A stretch of DNA of 63,389 nucleotides, the filler included, from Hyphochytrium catenoides (Eukaryota; Protista; Hyphochytriomycota), in assembly GCA_900088475.1 (NCBI GenBank). It is 12 parts of 12 records of this genome, joined end to end, with 100 filler letters (N's around TTAATTAATTAA, not from the genome) between each part and the next. Parts side by side here need not be neighbours in the genome. Positions count along the whole stretch, not along the records: positions 56,044 to 60,510 come from FLMG01001892.1; 11 more parts are not named here. One strand, written 5' to 3'. The notes under the pieces were generated by a model. The model was not told where the DNA came from, ran no database searches, and worked only from the letters and a program-made list of their open reading frames with translations. A program made the position numbers and the translations under genes. The stretch's first letter is position 1; every line of letters starts with the position of its first letter. This document shows positions 56,044-60,510 of this stretch, piece by piece.

Positions 56044-56472
56044 AGCCAGAGCCTCTGCATTGGCTGAAGAAGATCCGCCTTGGCCTGGGAAGAAGAAGAA
56101 GCCTTTGCCTGCGTTCTGGCTAATGGCCTGCGCGCTAGCAGAAGAGATGGACTGGGCATTGCCGCCGCCGAAGGGGAAGAAGAGGCCGCCGCTGTGGGAC
56201 TGGGAGAGAGCCAGAGCCTGCGCCTGAGCAGAAGAAGAGCCACTGCCAGGGAAGAAGAGAAAGCCATTTCCGTGGCTGGTAGCCTGAGCCTGTGCCTGAG
56301 CGATGGATTGGCTGTTGCTGCCGCCCAGGAAAGGAACAAGGAAGCCGCCGCTGTAAGGGCAGAGAAAGAGAAGGAGAGAACAAAAGGAGAAAGAGTGAGA
56401 GAGACAATCGGTGAGTTCAAGCGCCTTGCGAGTGTCAAAGAGAGAGAGAGAGAGAGAGACAGAGAGAGAGAG

Positions 56473-56525
<53 letters not shown>

Positions 56526-57096
56526 AAGAGAGAACAGGACCAGAAAAGAAGAGATGTCAAAAAGAAAGAAGAACTTACGCGTTATTGGCGCTAGAGACTG
56601 CTTGGGCGTCTGCAGAAGCCGATGAAGATCCTCCTCCGAGGCCGCTCCAGGGCCAAGAAGATCCGCCAATAGAGCTTGCTTGCGCATCCGCAATGGCAAC
56701 AGAAGATGAAGATCCCCCGCCTAGGCCTCCAAGGCCACCCCAGGGCCACGAAGAGCCACCGGTAGAGCTTGAGATTGCCTGGGCATTGGCAAAGGCGTTA
56801 GATGAAGATCCTCCGAGGCCTCCAATCCATGGAAATGAAGATCCAGTCGATGAAGCTGAAGCTTGAGCAGAGGCAAAAGATGTGGATCCACCACCGCCCA
56901 AGAATCCGCCTCCAGATCCAGACGCAATGGCTGTGCTGCTGGCAGAGGCAGAGCCGCCGCCAAAGGTATTGGCAACAGCGTTAGCCTGGGCAAAAGCGGA
57001 AGAAGCAGATCTGAGGTTGCGCTTGTCAGGCGCGGGAGCAGCGTCGGCAGCGGCGATGAGGAAGAGAAAAGATGCAGCGAGAGAGAGAATCTTCAT
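56044..57096 (-). CDS. Secreted Gly/Ser/Ala-rich repeat protein, copy A (3' truncated)
   Basis: MKILSLAASFLFLIAAADA signal peptide, then KRNLR and repeats. Exons 56579-57096 and 56044-56350, intron GC|GTAAGT...TACAG. Confidence 0.85.
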
Positions 57097-57254
57097 GGTG
57101 TTTACTTCTGTCGTTGACGGGCTTGTTGGCCGAGAGAGAAAACGAGAGAGAGAGAGAGAGTTTTCTTGTCTTAGTCTGTTTGATGGAGCACCGGAAGGAA
57201 TGTTGGATAATGAGTCGAGACTGCTCTTGCGCTTCGTCTGTTCTCTTTTAACCT

Positions 57255-57308
<54 letters not shown>

Positions 57309-58895
57309 CTGAAGCCCTCTCTCTTTCCTCTCCTGCCCAAGGCCTCTCTCTTTTTTCTCTTGCCCATAACCCCTCTCTTCTCTCCCCTGTCATGGTTTGT
57401 TTCTCTTCTTCTCTCCTGTCTAAGGCTTCTCTCTTCTCTCTCCTGCCCAAAGCCTCTCTCTTCTCTCAAGAAAGGCCCTTTCTTCTCTCAATGTAGGATC
57501 TCTAAGTGTCTCGTTGCTCTGAACCCCTGCCTTTCTACTATTGCCTGTCTGCCGCGGAGGAGGACTGTCTAAAAACATTATCATAAAAGATTTGGAGAAG
57601 GGAAAGAGAGAAAGAGAGGGAGAGAGAGAGAGAGAGAGAGACTGCAGAAACGGTTCACGATGACGTTTTCTGCCCGGAAACATCAAAAGAACAAAATAAT
57701 AAAGCAGAAAAAGCCGATGGAGAGACGGGTCACAGCTGTTCTATTGATGAGAATAAATAAACTCTCTCTCTCTCCGACTGAGGAAGAACACGCAGACGGC
57801 GCGGGCACTGAGAAAAAAAGGAACCTTTGGGGAGCAATCTGGGAGAAGAGAGAGAGAATAAGGAGATAAGAAACAAGAGAGAAGAAGAAGAAAACAAAGA
57901 AGAGAAAGAGAAAGAAAGAAAGAGAAAGAGGGAGAGAGAGAGAGAAAAAGAAGAAGCTGCATCTTCGCGATTAAATAAGAATAAACTGGACATAGAGCCA
58001 GTAGTAGTCTTGTTAATATCCAAAGGAAACAGCGGCAAAAGGAAAGAAAAGAACAAGTCAAATTTATAGTGAATCTTCTTTATAAAAGAAAAATGCTCGC
58101 TAATAAAAACCATTTCCAGAGTAGAAAAGATGACTTCCGCCCGTCTCTCCTCGGTAGCTCCCCCGCCCTTTGTGGCCGCCGTGTGATGATGATGGAGCTG
58201 CGTCCTTCCTCTTTTTTTTTTTTTTAGTTCTACTCAAGTGTTCGCTCTTGTTCGTCTTATTCGTAGTAGTTCTACATAGTTCTTATTGTATCTTTATAAA
58301 ACAGTAGTCTACTAGTCACTCCTTTTCTCAAAAAGAACGTCAATAAAAGGCCATTTTCTATCAATAGGAAGAATAGAGCAGTCCATCCAGAAGAAGGCAG
58401 GAGCCTGTCGTCGACGACAACGCCGCCTGCGTGGCAAACGTTCCGTGTGGGATGATCAACTGGAGAAGAACAGGCAGCACCACCGCAGTCGAAGACCAGC
58501 AATAATATGACGACAAAGCCACGCACGTCTTTCCTCCCTCTCCCCTTCAAGGACAGTGGGGCCGTCAGAAGAGAAACCGGTGGCATAAAACAAAAGAAAA
58601 AAGGCAAGAAGAGGCAAGAAGACTCAAAAAGAGCGAAAAAACATCACCACCACAGAAGATTGGTGCGTTGAGATCCCCCTAACCTTCTCCCTTTCCTGCC
58701 AATCAACTGGTCAGACTCCCAAATTCTCTCCATCGTGTCGCCCTGGTCATGGCTCTGATGAAGGGTCAACAGCACGAGAGAGTTTATTTATTCACGTCAA
58801 TAGAAGAGCTGTGTCCCGTCTCTCCGTCGATGTTTCTGCTTTCTTTTGTTCTCTTGAAGTTTCCGCGAAGAAAACGTCATCTTGAACCTCTTCCG

Positions 58896-58928
<33 letters not shown>

Positions 58929-58930
58929 CG

Positions 58931-59011
<81 letters not shown>

Positions 59012-59517
59012 CCGACCGCTCTCTCTCTACCTCTCTCTCTCCCTCCAAATCTTTTCTGATTATGATGCCTTTAGACAGTCCTCCTCCGCTGAAGAAGAGA
59101 GACAATAGTAGAAAGGCGGGGGTTCAGTGCGAAGAGACACTTTGAGATCCTACGATGAGAGAAGAAAAGGCCTTTCTTGAGAGAAGAGAGAGGCTTTGGG
59201 CAGGAGAGAGCAGAGAGAAACCTTGGACAGAGAGAAGAAGAGGGAAACCTTGGACAGGAGAGAGAAGAGAGAGGTTATGCGCAGGAGAGAGAAGAGAGAG
59301 GCCCTTGGCAGGAGAGGAAAGAGAGAGGCTTCAGGAGAGAGAAAGAGAGGAAGGAAGGAGAGATTATGAGACAGCAGACGAAGCGCAAGAGCAGTCTCAA
59401 CTCATTATCCAACATTCCCTCCAGCGCTCAACCAACCGACCAAGACAAGAAAACTCTCTCTCTCTCTCTCGTTTTCTCTCTCGGCCACCAAGCCCGTCAA
59501 CAACAGAAGTAAACACC

Positions 59518-60510
59518 ATGAAGATTCTCTCTCTCGCCGCAGCTCTTCTCTTCCTCATCACCGCTGCCGACGCTGCTCCTGCGCCTGACAAGCGCAACCT
59601 CAGATCTTCTTCTTCCGCTTTTGCCCAGGCTAACGCTGTTGCCAATACCTTTGGCGGCGGCTCTGCCTCTGCCAGCAGCACAGCTATTGCGTCTGGATCT
59701 GGAGGCGGATTCTTCGGCGGTGGATCCACATCTTTTGCCTCTGCTCAAGCTTCAGCTTCATCGACTGGATCTTCATTTCCATGGAATGGAGGCCTCGGAG
59801 GATCTTCATCTAACGCCTTTGCCAATGCCCAGGCAATCTCAAGCTCTACCGGTGGCTCTTCGTGGCCGTGGGGGGGCCTTGGAGGCCTAGGCGGAGGATC
59901 TTCATCTTCTGTTGCCATTGCGGATGCGCAAGCAAGCTCTATTGGCGGATCTTCTTGGCCCTGGAGCGGCCTCGGAGGAGGATCTTCATCGGCTTCTGCC
60001 AACGCTCAGGCAGTCTCTAGCGCCAATAACGCGTAAGTTCTTCTTTCTTTGGACATCTCTTCTTTTCTGGTCCTGTTCTCTCTTTCTCTCTTCTGGTATT
60101 CTCTCTCTCTCGCTCTCTCTCTCTTTGACTCTCGCAAGGCGCTTGGACTCACCGATTGTCTCTCTCGCTCTATCTTTCTCCTTCTCTTTCTCTGCCCTTA
60201 CAGCGGCGGCTTCCTTGTCCCTTTCCTGGGCGGCAGCAACAGCCAATCCATCGCCCAGGCACAGTCTCAGGCTACCAGCCAAGGAACTGGCTTTCTCTTC
60301 TTCCCTGGCAGTGGCTCTTCTTCTGCTCAGGCGCAGGCTCTGGCTCTCTCCCAGTCCAACAGTGGCGGCCTCTTCTTCCCCTTCAGCGGCGGCAATGCCC
60401 AGTCCATCTCTTCTGCTAACGCGCAGGCCATCAGCCAGAACACAGGCAAAGGCTTCTTCTTCTTTCCAGGCCAAGGCGGATCTTCTTCAGCCAATGCAGA
60501 GGCTCTGGCT
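59518..60510 (+). CDS. Secreted Gly/Ser/Ala-rich repeat protein, copy B (3' truncated)
   Basis: MKILSLAAALLFLITAADA signal peptide, then KRNLR and repeats. Exons 59518-60032 and 60204-60510; near-identical to copy A. Confidence 0.85.

Follow-up and report, generated by a model that had tools for sequence, protein, structure and literature searches.

What does a gene encode whose predicted protein is nearly free of charge, is built of alternating alanine-containing and glycine-rich blocks, and runs off the end of its contig? We took up this question for a locus of Hyphochytrium catenoides (assembly GCA_900088475.1) in a window of 63,389 nucleotides, the whole stretch of DNA analyzed here, in which 12 parts of the genome are joined end to end. 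The part from record FLMG01001892.1 (positions 56044-60510 of the window; 4467 nt, GC content 0.51) contains two gene copies, which are divergently transcribed paralogues of a lineage-restricted, two-exon eukaryotic gene; we call the plus-strand copy R and the minus-strand copy L. An earlier note on this DNA had described a single gene, which stands as copy R, and had missed the inverted duplication that places a second copy on the minus strand. The answer we favor, at a probability of roughly 45%, is that the product is a silk-like or functional-amyloid-like secreted protein that would assemble noncovalently into beta-rich extracellular material, as its residue pattern suggests. The looser claim that the protein has an extracellular structural or coating role appears rather probable.

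Results

A predicted spliced gene under coding-type constraint

The frame of copy R exon 1 runs into a TAA inside the GTAAGT donor, the intron is in phase 2, and from 60204 onward the reading continues without a stop as far as the contig end; both copies keep the GTAAGT and TTACAG splice sites. Over 273 aligned codons, copies R and L differ at 29, with 15 synonymous and 14 nonsynonymous changes (proportions of synonymous and nonsynonymous differences, pS 0.069 and pN 0.023; ratio of nonsynonymous to synonymous divergence, dN/dS, 0.34), and the differences are distributed over codon positions 1, 2, and 3 as 9:3:17 (chi-square p 0.006). Exon divergence between the copies is 3.1-3.9%, with a sole exon indel of 3 nt, in frame. 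The introns differ by 7.6% mismatch plus 60 gapped bases and, at 171 and 228 nt, are 57 nt apart in length, and the 350 nt upstream of the ATG show 13% mismatch, with indels that break the upstream frame. Together, the dN/dS value, the third-position excess, the single in-frame indel, and the faster divergence of intron and upstream DNA indicate constraint of the coding type.

Open frames alone are uninformative at this locus, where all three plus-strand frames and some minus-strand frames are largely open across exon 2, and the coding case is therefore built on the pattern of substitutions, on conservation of the start and splice sites, and on a repeat architecture present in a single frame. 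A longer open reading frame (ORF) from an ATG at 59155 was considered as the true start and rejected, as copy L does not preserve that frame; the loss of the upstream frame between copies identifies the ATG at 59518 as the start. We regard it as highly probable that this is a real gene for a secreted repeat protein. The proposal of an intron-containing gene for a secreted protein thus held up, with our translations reproducing every peptide quoted in the earlier note and with splice sites and constraint evident in two copies. The same note needs one correction here: the protein is incomplete, exon 2 being cut by the contig end. All searches and folding runs were made with exon 1 and exon 2 separately rather than with a joined protein.

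Residues 1-19 (59518-59574) are shaped like a signal peptide in both copies, with MK, a 15-residue hydrophobic core, and A-D-A giving the n/h/c layout and an A-x-A site; AlphaFold models residues 4-15 as a helix. The propeptide that follows, APAPDKRNLR (59575-59604), is conserved in both copies, and RNLR, the end of KRNLR, occupies residues 26-29 (59593-59604), 7 residues past the predicted cleavage site, with a mirror site in copy L. We take KRNLR to be readable equally as a Kex2/furin dibasic site (D-K-R, as in yeast alpha-factor), as the RXL site of diatom wall proteins, or as an RxLR motif. The product would enter the secretory pathway by way of its N-terminal signal peptide and would probably be trimmed at this conserved basic site.

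Alanine and glycine are segregated into alternating blocks

Beyond the propeptide, charged residues number 1 of 142 in exon 1 and 2 of 102 in exon 2, or 3 of 244 in all, and the 244 mature residues seen contain no Cys, His, Met, or Tyr. This sequence is organized as at least 10 units of about 26-32 residues, each consisting of an x-Ala strand block and a Gly-rich block. The 10-17 residues of a "strand" block include no Gly or Pro (0% each), 25-30% Ala, and 31-38% Ser, with Gln plus Asn at 14% in exon 1 and 29% in exon 2. The "loop" blocks, of 3-16 residues, are 40-56% Gly, 0% Ala, and 5-15% Ser and hold all of the Pro and nearly all of the Phe, Trp, and Leu, so that Ala and Gly are wholly segregated into alternate blocks. 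Within strand blocks, Ala or Ser occupies every second position, with Gln, Asn, Ile, Leu, Val, or Phe between, usually around A-Q-A or A-N-A. This dipeptide periodicity would give a strand one face of Ala/Ser and an opposite face of Gln, Asn, Ile, Leu, Phe, and Val.

The pattern is far from what composition alone produces. There are 11 instances of A-x-A-x-A in exon 1 and 5 in exon 2 (shuffle means of 0.30 and 0.13, with none of 5000 shuffles reaching the observed count), and the corresponding counts of A[Q/N]A are 8 and 6 (0.44 and 0.35 expected), both motifs being more than 15-fold above shuffles. Gly autocorrelation peaks at lags of 27-31, and 16 units from both copies yield a 28-position consensus, S-x-S-x-A-x-A-x-A-Q-A-x-S-S-S-x-G-G-G-F-x-P-x-x-G-x-G-G. 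The units are only 62-90% alike at the DNA level, which indicates that the array is old rather than a recent expansion.

Chemistry of the Gly-rich blocks changes at the intron, which sits exactly between strand 6 and the Gly block belonging to that strand. The aromatic motifs are FPW, WPW, and WPW in exon 1 and FLVPF, FLFFP, LFFPF, and FFFFP in exon 2; exon 1 accounts for all 5 of the Trp residues (Fisher p 0.08), and exon 2 is the richer in Gln (p 0.02) and consists of Phe to 12%. These data bear out what the earlier note had read as a near charge-free body after the signal peptide and KRNLR, as alternating small-residue strands and Gly-rich blocks (here more strictly segregated than it had claimed), and as a switch of motif at the intron from FPW/WPW to F-rich forms. 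Its further statement that every Gly loop carries an aromatic-Pro motif applies to the later units but not to the first two exon-1 loops, GGG and GSGGGFFGGG, which are without Pro or Trp.

An orphan in family, structure, and metagenome searches

Searches of Pfam-A (hmmscan, E up to 10, with the exons of both copies) and NCBIfam returned sub-threshold noise only (DIM, PH_6, and ser_rich_anae_1), and PDB sequences gave only noise with each exon and with the 28-position profile of the 16 repeat units. No relative of exon 1 or exon 2 was found in a word-indexed library of 5.8 billion protein clusters, where the exon 2 query was the open frame at 60049-60510, region 53-154, a choice that widened the range of lengths covered. 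A phmmer search with exon 1 over 1.84 billion cluster representatives, whatever their length, had 0 matches at E up to 0.001. No relative was confirmed when metagenome, prokaryote-genome, and viral contigs were scanned with back-translated queries, and the 10 metagenome matches to a degenerate DNA pattern for W-P-W-x-G-L-G-G...A-Q-A were all chance occurrences in high-GC bacterial contigs. An exact-sequence look-up of the two possible unspliced ORF products found neither in the assembly index, and a full-text literature search on six of the protein's motifs gave nothing relevant. In the ESM Atlas, exon 1 had weak arthropod neighbors, hypothetical or "pupal cuticle protein 36-like" (0.81-0.84, under the 0.9 level for a lead), and exon 2 had none.

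Composition filters in HMMER, tblastn, and BLAST penalize low-complexity sequences of this kind, and the blank searches thus exclude close relatives and known families rather than distant compositional look-alikes. The "silk homology" of barnacle cement proteins, for example, was seen only with BLAST filters off (PMC5099703). The protein itself was missing from the libraries, and the gene models of its source genome are therefore evidently not in them. Within these bounds, the family, PDB, large-library, and contig searches were uniformly blank, in agreement with the earlier description of the protein as new. Judged by its sequence, the protein is an orphan outside every family tested and would represent a family that is new in sequence among secreted block-copolymer structural proteins, in the silk-like or functional-amyloid-like class.

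Comparison with known secreted repeat proteins

An analogy with silks and curli, also drawn in the earlier note, is fair at the level of architecture but does not extend to membership, as no curli, spidroin, glycine-rich protein (GRP), or Pir family in Pfam matches at E up to 10. The bacterial functional amyloids curli CsgA and Pseudomonas FapC are likewise secreted and made of tandem 20- to 30-residue units with conserved Gln/Asn in the strands and Gly turns, and they fold as a two-sheet solenoid, to which a weak exon-2 model described below can be aligned. Unlike curli, the protein has no match to the Curlin repeat (PF07012, S-x5-Q-x-G-x-G-N-x-A-x3-Q) at E up to 10, and a PDB search that included CsgA was blank. 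Its gene has a spliceosomal GT-AG intron and a signal peptide for the endoplasmic reticulum, and the FLMG01001892.1 part holds no other genes and hence no csg operon context, nucleator, or secretion partners. Where curli pairs two similar polar strands, each unit here would have an x-Ala strand and a Phe/Trp-Pro strand.

Spider and Bombyx fibroins, the cross-beta silk of lacewing egg stalks, and Gly/Ser-rich barnacle cement (PMC5099703) resemble this protein in alternating Ala/Ser beta-forming blocks with Gly-rich blocks, in being secreted, low in complexity, and charge-poor, and in coming up blank in filtered searches. The blocks here differ in being shorter (x-Ala)n runs with a central Gln and no Gly, rather than poly-Ala or (GA)n, and in having W-P-W or F-F-P within the Gly blocks, and there is no sequence homology. 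As to spidroin terminal domains, only the signal peptide and a 10-residue propeptide precede the repeats, no Pfam spidroin model matches, and the C terminus lies past the contig end. Plant class I and V GRPs and insect cuticle and chorion proteins share a signal peptide followed by Gly-rich aromatic repeats with GGLGG-like motifs; in contrast to them, this protein lacks Tyr, confines Gly to half of the unit, has Ala/Gln blocks with no counterpart, and gives no match at E up to 10 to GRP (PF07172) or cuticle (PF00379 and others) models.

Yeast Pir proteins and Kex2-processed fungal repellents also combine a signal peptide, a propeptide ending in KR, and internal repeats containing Gln. The present protein differs in having a single dibasic site, no match to the PIR repeat (PF00399; Q-[IV]-x-D-G-Q-[IVP]-Q), no D-G-Q, and no Cys in the 244 residues seen, the region of the four-Cys C-terminal domain being past the contig end. 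Hydrophobins, with their eight-Cys pattern, and chaplins differ from it in the same way, as it has no Cys and no Pfam match. The parallel beta-roll of RTX proteins and AlgE provides the best superposition of the exon-2 model, at a background score, and is likewise a two-sheet roll of short Gly-rich repeats. The GGxGxD calcium-binding nonapeptide of RTX proteins is absent (Asp, 0 in exon 2 and 1 in exon 1), and the unit is about 27 residues rather than 18. Motifs of the RxLR type typically lie about 30-60 residues from the N terminus in oomycete effectors. RNLR is present here but without EER, and the body is predicted to be beta or disordered rather than helical of the WY type. PiLLP of Phytophthora was considered as a close analogue and rejected, being without a signal peptide (PMC5298957).

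Discussion

How the repeats could assemble

According to the reading we favor, x-Ala segments would pair as beta-strands outside the cell, presenting a flat small-residue face and a polar/aliphatic face, while Gly-flanked aromatic/Pro segments would supply turns plus a hydrophobic seam or second sheet. Each unit could then form one turn of a stacked beta-solenoid or of a cross-beta-like array in which the Ala/Gln strands make up one sheet, and units might stack within or between chains to produce a wall, coat, matrix, or adhesive material. Since Cys, Tyr, and Lys are lacking, the usual covalent cross-linking is unlikely, and assembly would have to be noncovalent. The composition also bears on the kind of material expected. 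Twice the Pro fraction plus the Gly fraction (2P+G), for which the dividing threshold is about 0.6, is 0.25 overall. Low Pro and Gly mark the ordered, amyloid-capable side and high values the elastomeric side, in the account of Rauscher et al. (2006) that is cited in PMC5703643. On that principle, a value of 0.25 would group the protein with ordered, amyloid-capable sequences rather than with elastomeric ones.

Structure prediction gives points on both sides: the strands placed on A-Q-A and F-rich segments and the kinds of fold that were matched favor such an assembly, and the low model confidence and background-level match scores count against it. AlphaFold2, run without an alignment, left exon 1 unfolded, with a mean predicted local distance difference test score (pLDDT) of 41 and short strands exactly on the A-Q-A segments at 74-80, 102-108, and 135-140. 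The best exon-2 model was a weak two-sheet beta-solenoid (pLDDT 57; predicted template modeling score, pTM, 0.54), and the other four models scored 33-43. Foldseek found nothing in the PDB at E below 1 for the exon-2 model, and beta-helical antifreeze proteins (3vn3 and 3uyu) are included in that sub-significant listing. With an exhaustive structural aligner, the best matches were nearly all beta-rolls or beta-solenoids, among them an RTX block (7usl_C, Z 7.6, root mean square deviation [rmsd] of 2.2 A over 73 residues; also 7rah, 6sus, 2ml1, and 9cse), the CsgA fibril (Z 7.3, rmsd of 8.3 A over 83 residues), and FapC (Z 3.7), for an aligner whose stated background puts Z 7-8 as the typical best score of models without a true match. 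Further matches were to SufBD, EtpA, the AlgE R-module, MpAFP, Rhagium AFP, and the MinC/CAP beta-helices. The sequence itself supplies further points against assembly. Ser, at 29% in exon 1 and 20% in exon 2, occurs as S3-S4 runs at every block junction, and exon-1 units vary in length from 19 to 32 residues, a spread that a regular solenoid would not readily accommodate. The C terminus beyond the contig end could hold an anchor or a further domain. Orphan proteins that are secreted and low in complexity are, moreover, common in eukaryotic genomes.

In the exon-2 model, eight strands alternate between A-Q-A segments and F-rich segments. It displays AlphaFold's leaning, one coil per 27-residue unit with Ala/Gln strands in one sheet and Phe strands in the sheet opposite, and does not thereby establish the fold. 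The stacked beta-meander or solenoid anticipated in the earlier note appeared in one of five exon-2 models and failed to appear in exon 1, and the aromatic segments it had called loops became a second set of beta-strands in that weak model. We regard an ordered beta-solenoid or cross-beta assembly as somewhat unlikely.

Alternative explanations

The main competing explanation, somewhat unlikely in our judgment, is that the protein is a disordered, heavily O-glycosylated protein of a wall or mucin-like kind, or a hydrated Gly-rich matrix protein, in which Ser runs would be glycan sites and Gly/aromatic blocks flexible spacers. The Ser runs fit this explanation equally well, as do loop blocks of 40-56% Gly and an exon 1 predicted to be essentially unstructured at pLDDT 41. 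Fungal wall proteins typically have a dibasic site after the signal peptide, and motifs of the GGLGG type are found among elastomeric and matrix proteins. A spacer, however, needs neither the strict x-Ala periodicity nor the exclusion of Gly and Pro from strand blocks; the sequence seen has no N-glycosylation sequons and little Thr (3-4%), and its 2P+G is far under elastomer levels by the principle cited in PMC5703643. An amphipathic surface coat, akin to hydrophobins, chaplins, or fungal repellents and forming a beta-film at an air-water or cell-surface interface, is improbable, and a rarer variant of this idea would bind ice or crystals through the flat Ala/Ser face. Near absence of charge, the Phe content of exon 2, strands with a flat small-residue face, and antifreeze proteins among the weak fold matches (3vn3, 3uyu, MpAFP, and Rhagium AFP) all speak for a coat. 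It is countered by the lack of any hydrophobin or chaplin model match, by the absence of Cys compared with eight in hydrophobins, and by structural matches that are all at background level.

Still less probable is a secreted host-directed effector or peptide precursor, with RNLR acting as an RxLR- or RXL-type motif and a body like the Gly-Ser-rich effectors of rust fungi. The position of RNLR in both copies, 7 residues past the predicted cleavage site, could be read this way, and recent duplication is typical of effector genes. RxLR motifs usually sit farther from the signal peptide, no EER motif is present, and the regular strand/loop repeat lacks a parallel in known effectors; a single basic site means that this is no multipeptide precursor, and a dN/dS of 0.34 gives no sign of positive selection. 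Secreted, lineage-restricted Gly/Ser-rich effectors do exist in rust fungi (PMC9321418). Least probable of all is an artifact, either low-complexity DNA that happens to be open in several frames or a palindromic contig produced when assembly joined two alleles. Many frames are indeed open across exon 2, the two arms of the palindrome share their end base, and CT/GA microsatellites abound. Against an artifact, the third-position excess and dN/dS of 0.34 belong to the proposed frame, the repeat architecture is confined to a single frame, and conservation of the ATG, signal peptide, and splice sites goes along with flanks that have diverged and lost the frame. Divergence between the arms is 3-13%, their microsatellites are of unequal length, and the spacer of about 1 kb that they enclose is asymmetric; the copies are therefore distinct loci.

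Layout of the inverted pair

The two copies lie head to head, with start codons about 2.4 kb apart at 57096 (copy L, minus strand) and 59518 (copy R, plus strand) and with exon identity of 96-97% (Table 1). Complementary arms are found at 56044-56377 and 60177-60510 (pair I2, 96%) and in two further pairs, I1 and I3 (56561-56896 with 59715-60050; 56891-57185 with 59429-59723), with coding parts at 95-97% overall, and similarity persists at 83-88% to at least 57699 and 58841. The contig ends fall at the identical homologous base in both arms (56044 in L, 60510 in R), which suggests an assembly break where the copies become identical or where coding repeats recur beyond. No feature of this part points to a human origin. 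A head-to-head gene pair is compatible with a need for high dosage, suggestively at most. Scans of the central spacer revealed no tRNA and nothing credible among Rfam families, and none of its ORFs is convincing.

Table 1. Positions in the window of the two gene copies and of the DNA between them
Feature	Position	Strand	Description
Copy R exon 1	59518..60032	+	171 codons plus 2 bases; signal peptide, propeptide, and repeat units 1-6a (from translation and ORF list)
Copy R intron	60033..60203	+	171 nt; GTAAGT, polypyrimidine, TTACAG; (TC)n microsatellite inside
Copy R exon 2	60204..60510	+	102 full codons from 60205; units 6b-10, F-rich Pro motifs, Gln-rich strands; cut by contig end
Copy L exon 1	56579..57096	-	172 codons plus 2 bases; architecture as in copy R plus one Gly
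Copy L intron	56351..56578	-	228 nt; splice sites of copy R kept; longer microsatellite, (AG)n as read on the plus strand
Copy L exon 2	56044..56350	-	Cut by contig end
27-nt tandem repeat, copy R side	59179..59350	+	6.6 copies, 170-340 nt upstream of ATG
27-nt tandem repeat, copy L side	57286..57467	-	6.5 copies, upstream of ATG
Central spacer	57700..58840		About 1 kb, mostly asymmetric, A/T-richer, GC content 0.35-0.50

Upstream of each ATG, a 27-nt element with the consensus GAGAGAAGAGAGAGGCCTTGGGCAGGA is repeated in tandem about 6.5 times. Copies R and L do not share its frame, and the repeat is therefore noncoding; it may be a promoter or 5'-leader element, and it resembles the promoter-proximal 27-bp repeat arrays of coccidian genes. 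Each ATG is also preceded, at a distance of about 115 nt (near 59399 and 57215), by a CTCATT...CAACATT sequence that we take to be loosely like the oomycete initiator/flanking promoter region (Inr/FPR) core, at 12 of 16 positions, and that, like the readings of KRNLR, serves as a lineage hint only. Noncoding DNA is very dense in (GA)n/(CT)n microsatellites (56439-56533, 57253-57306, 57605-57641, 58899-59045, and 60077-60124, one of them within an intron). At 57127-57338, ahead of the copy L start, a (GA)n tract and a (CT)n tract can form a long hairpin with each other, which accounts for several spurious, far-sub-threshold Rfam matches to plant microRNA families. A heptamer, [A/T]GAGACG, has three intergenic copies (57721, 58142, and 58817), each inside GGAGAGACGGG, two of them at mirror positions in the arms.

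Implications

At its most ambitious, the evidence can be arranged into a new family of eukaryotic beta-solenoid fibers, a curli-like functional amyloid invented independently, with coils of about 27 residues that would set an Ala/Ser-faced strand bearing a stacked Gln/Asn ladder against a stacked Phe/Trp-Pro strand. The intron would then separate a Trp-type from a Phe-type module of different surface chemistry, and the inverted gene pair would give a high dose of wall, coat, or adhesive material; we think this full picture unlikely. If the protein is merely a disordered glycoprotein, it would be one more lineage-specific, low-complexity secreted protein. If it does self-assemble, as our preferred reading holds, it would represent an independent eukaryotic route to stacked-beta extracellular material. 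Its sequence code, clean and designable in that Ala and Gly are segregated and that it is uncharged and without cross-linkable residues, would then be relevant to functional amyloids, biomaterials, and cell-surface biology.

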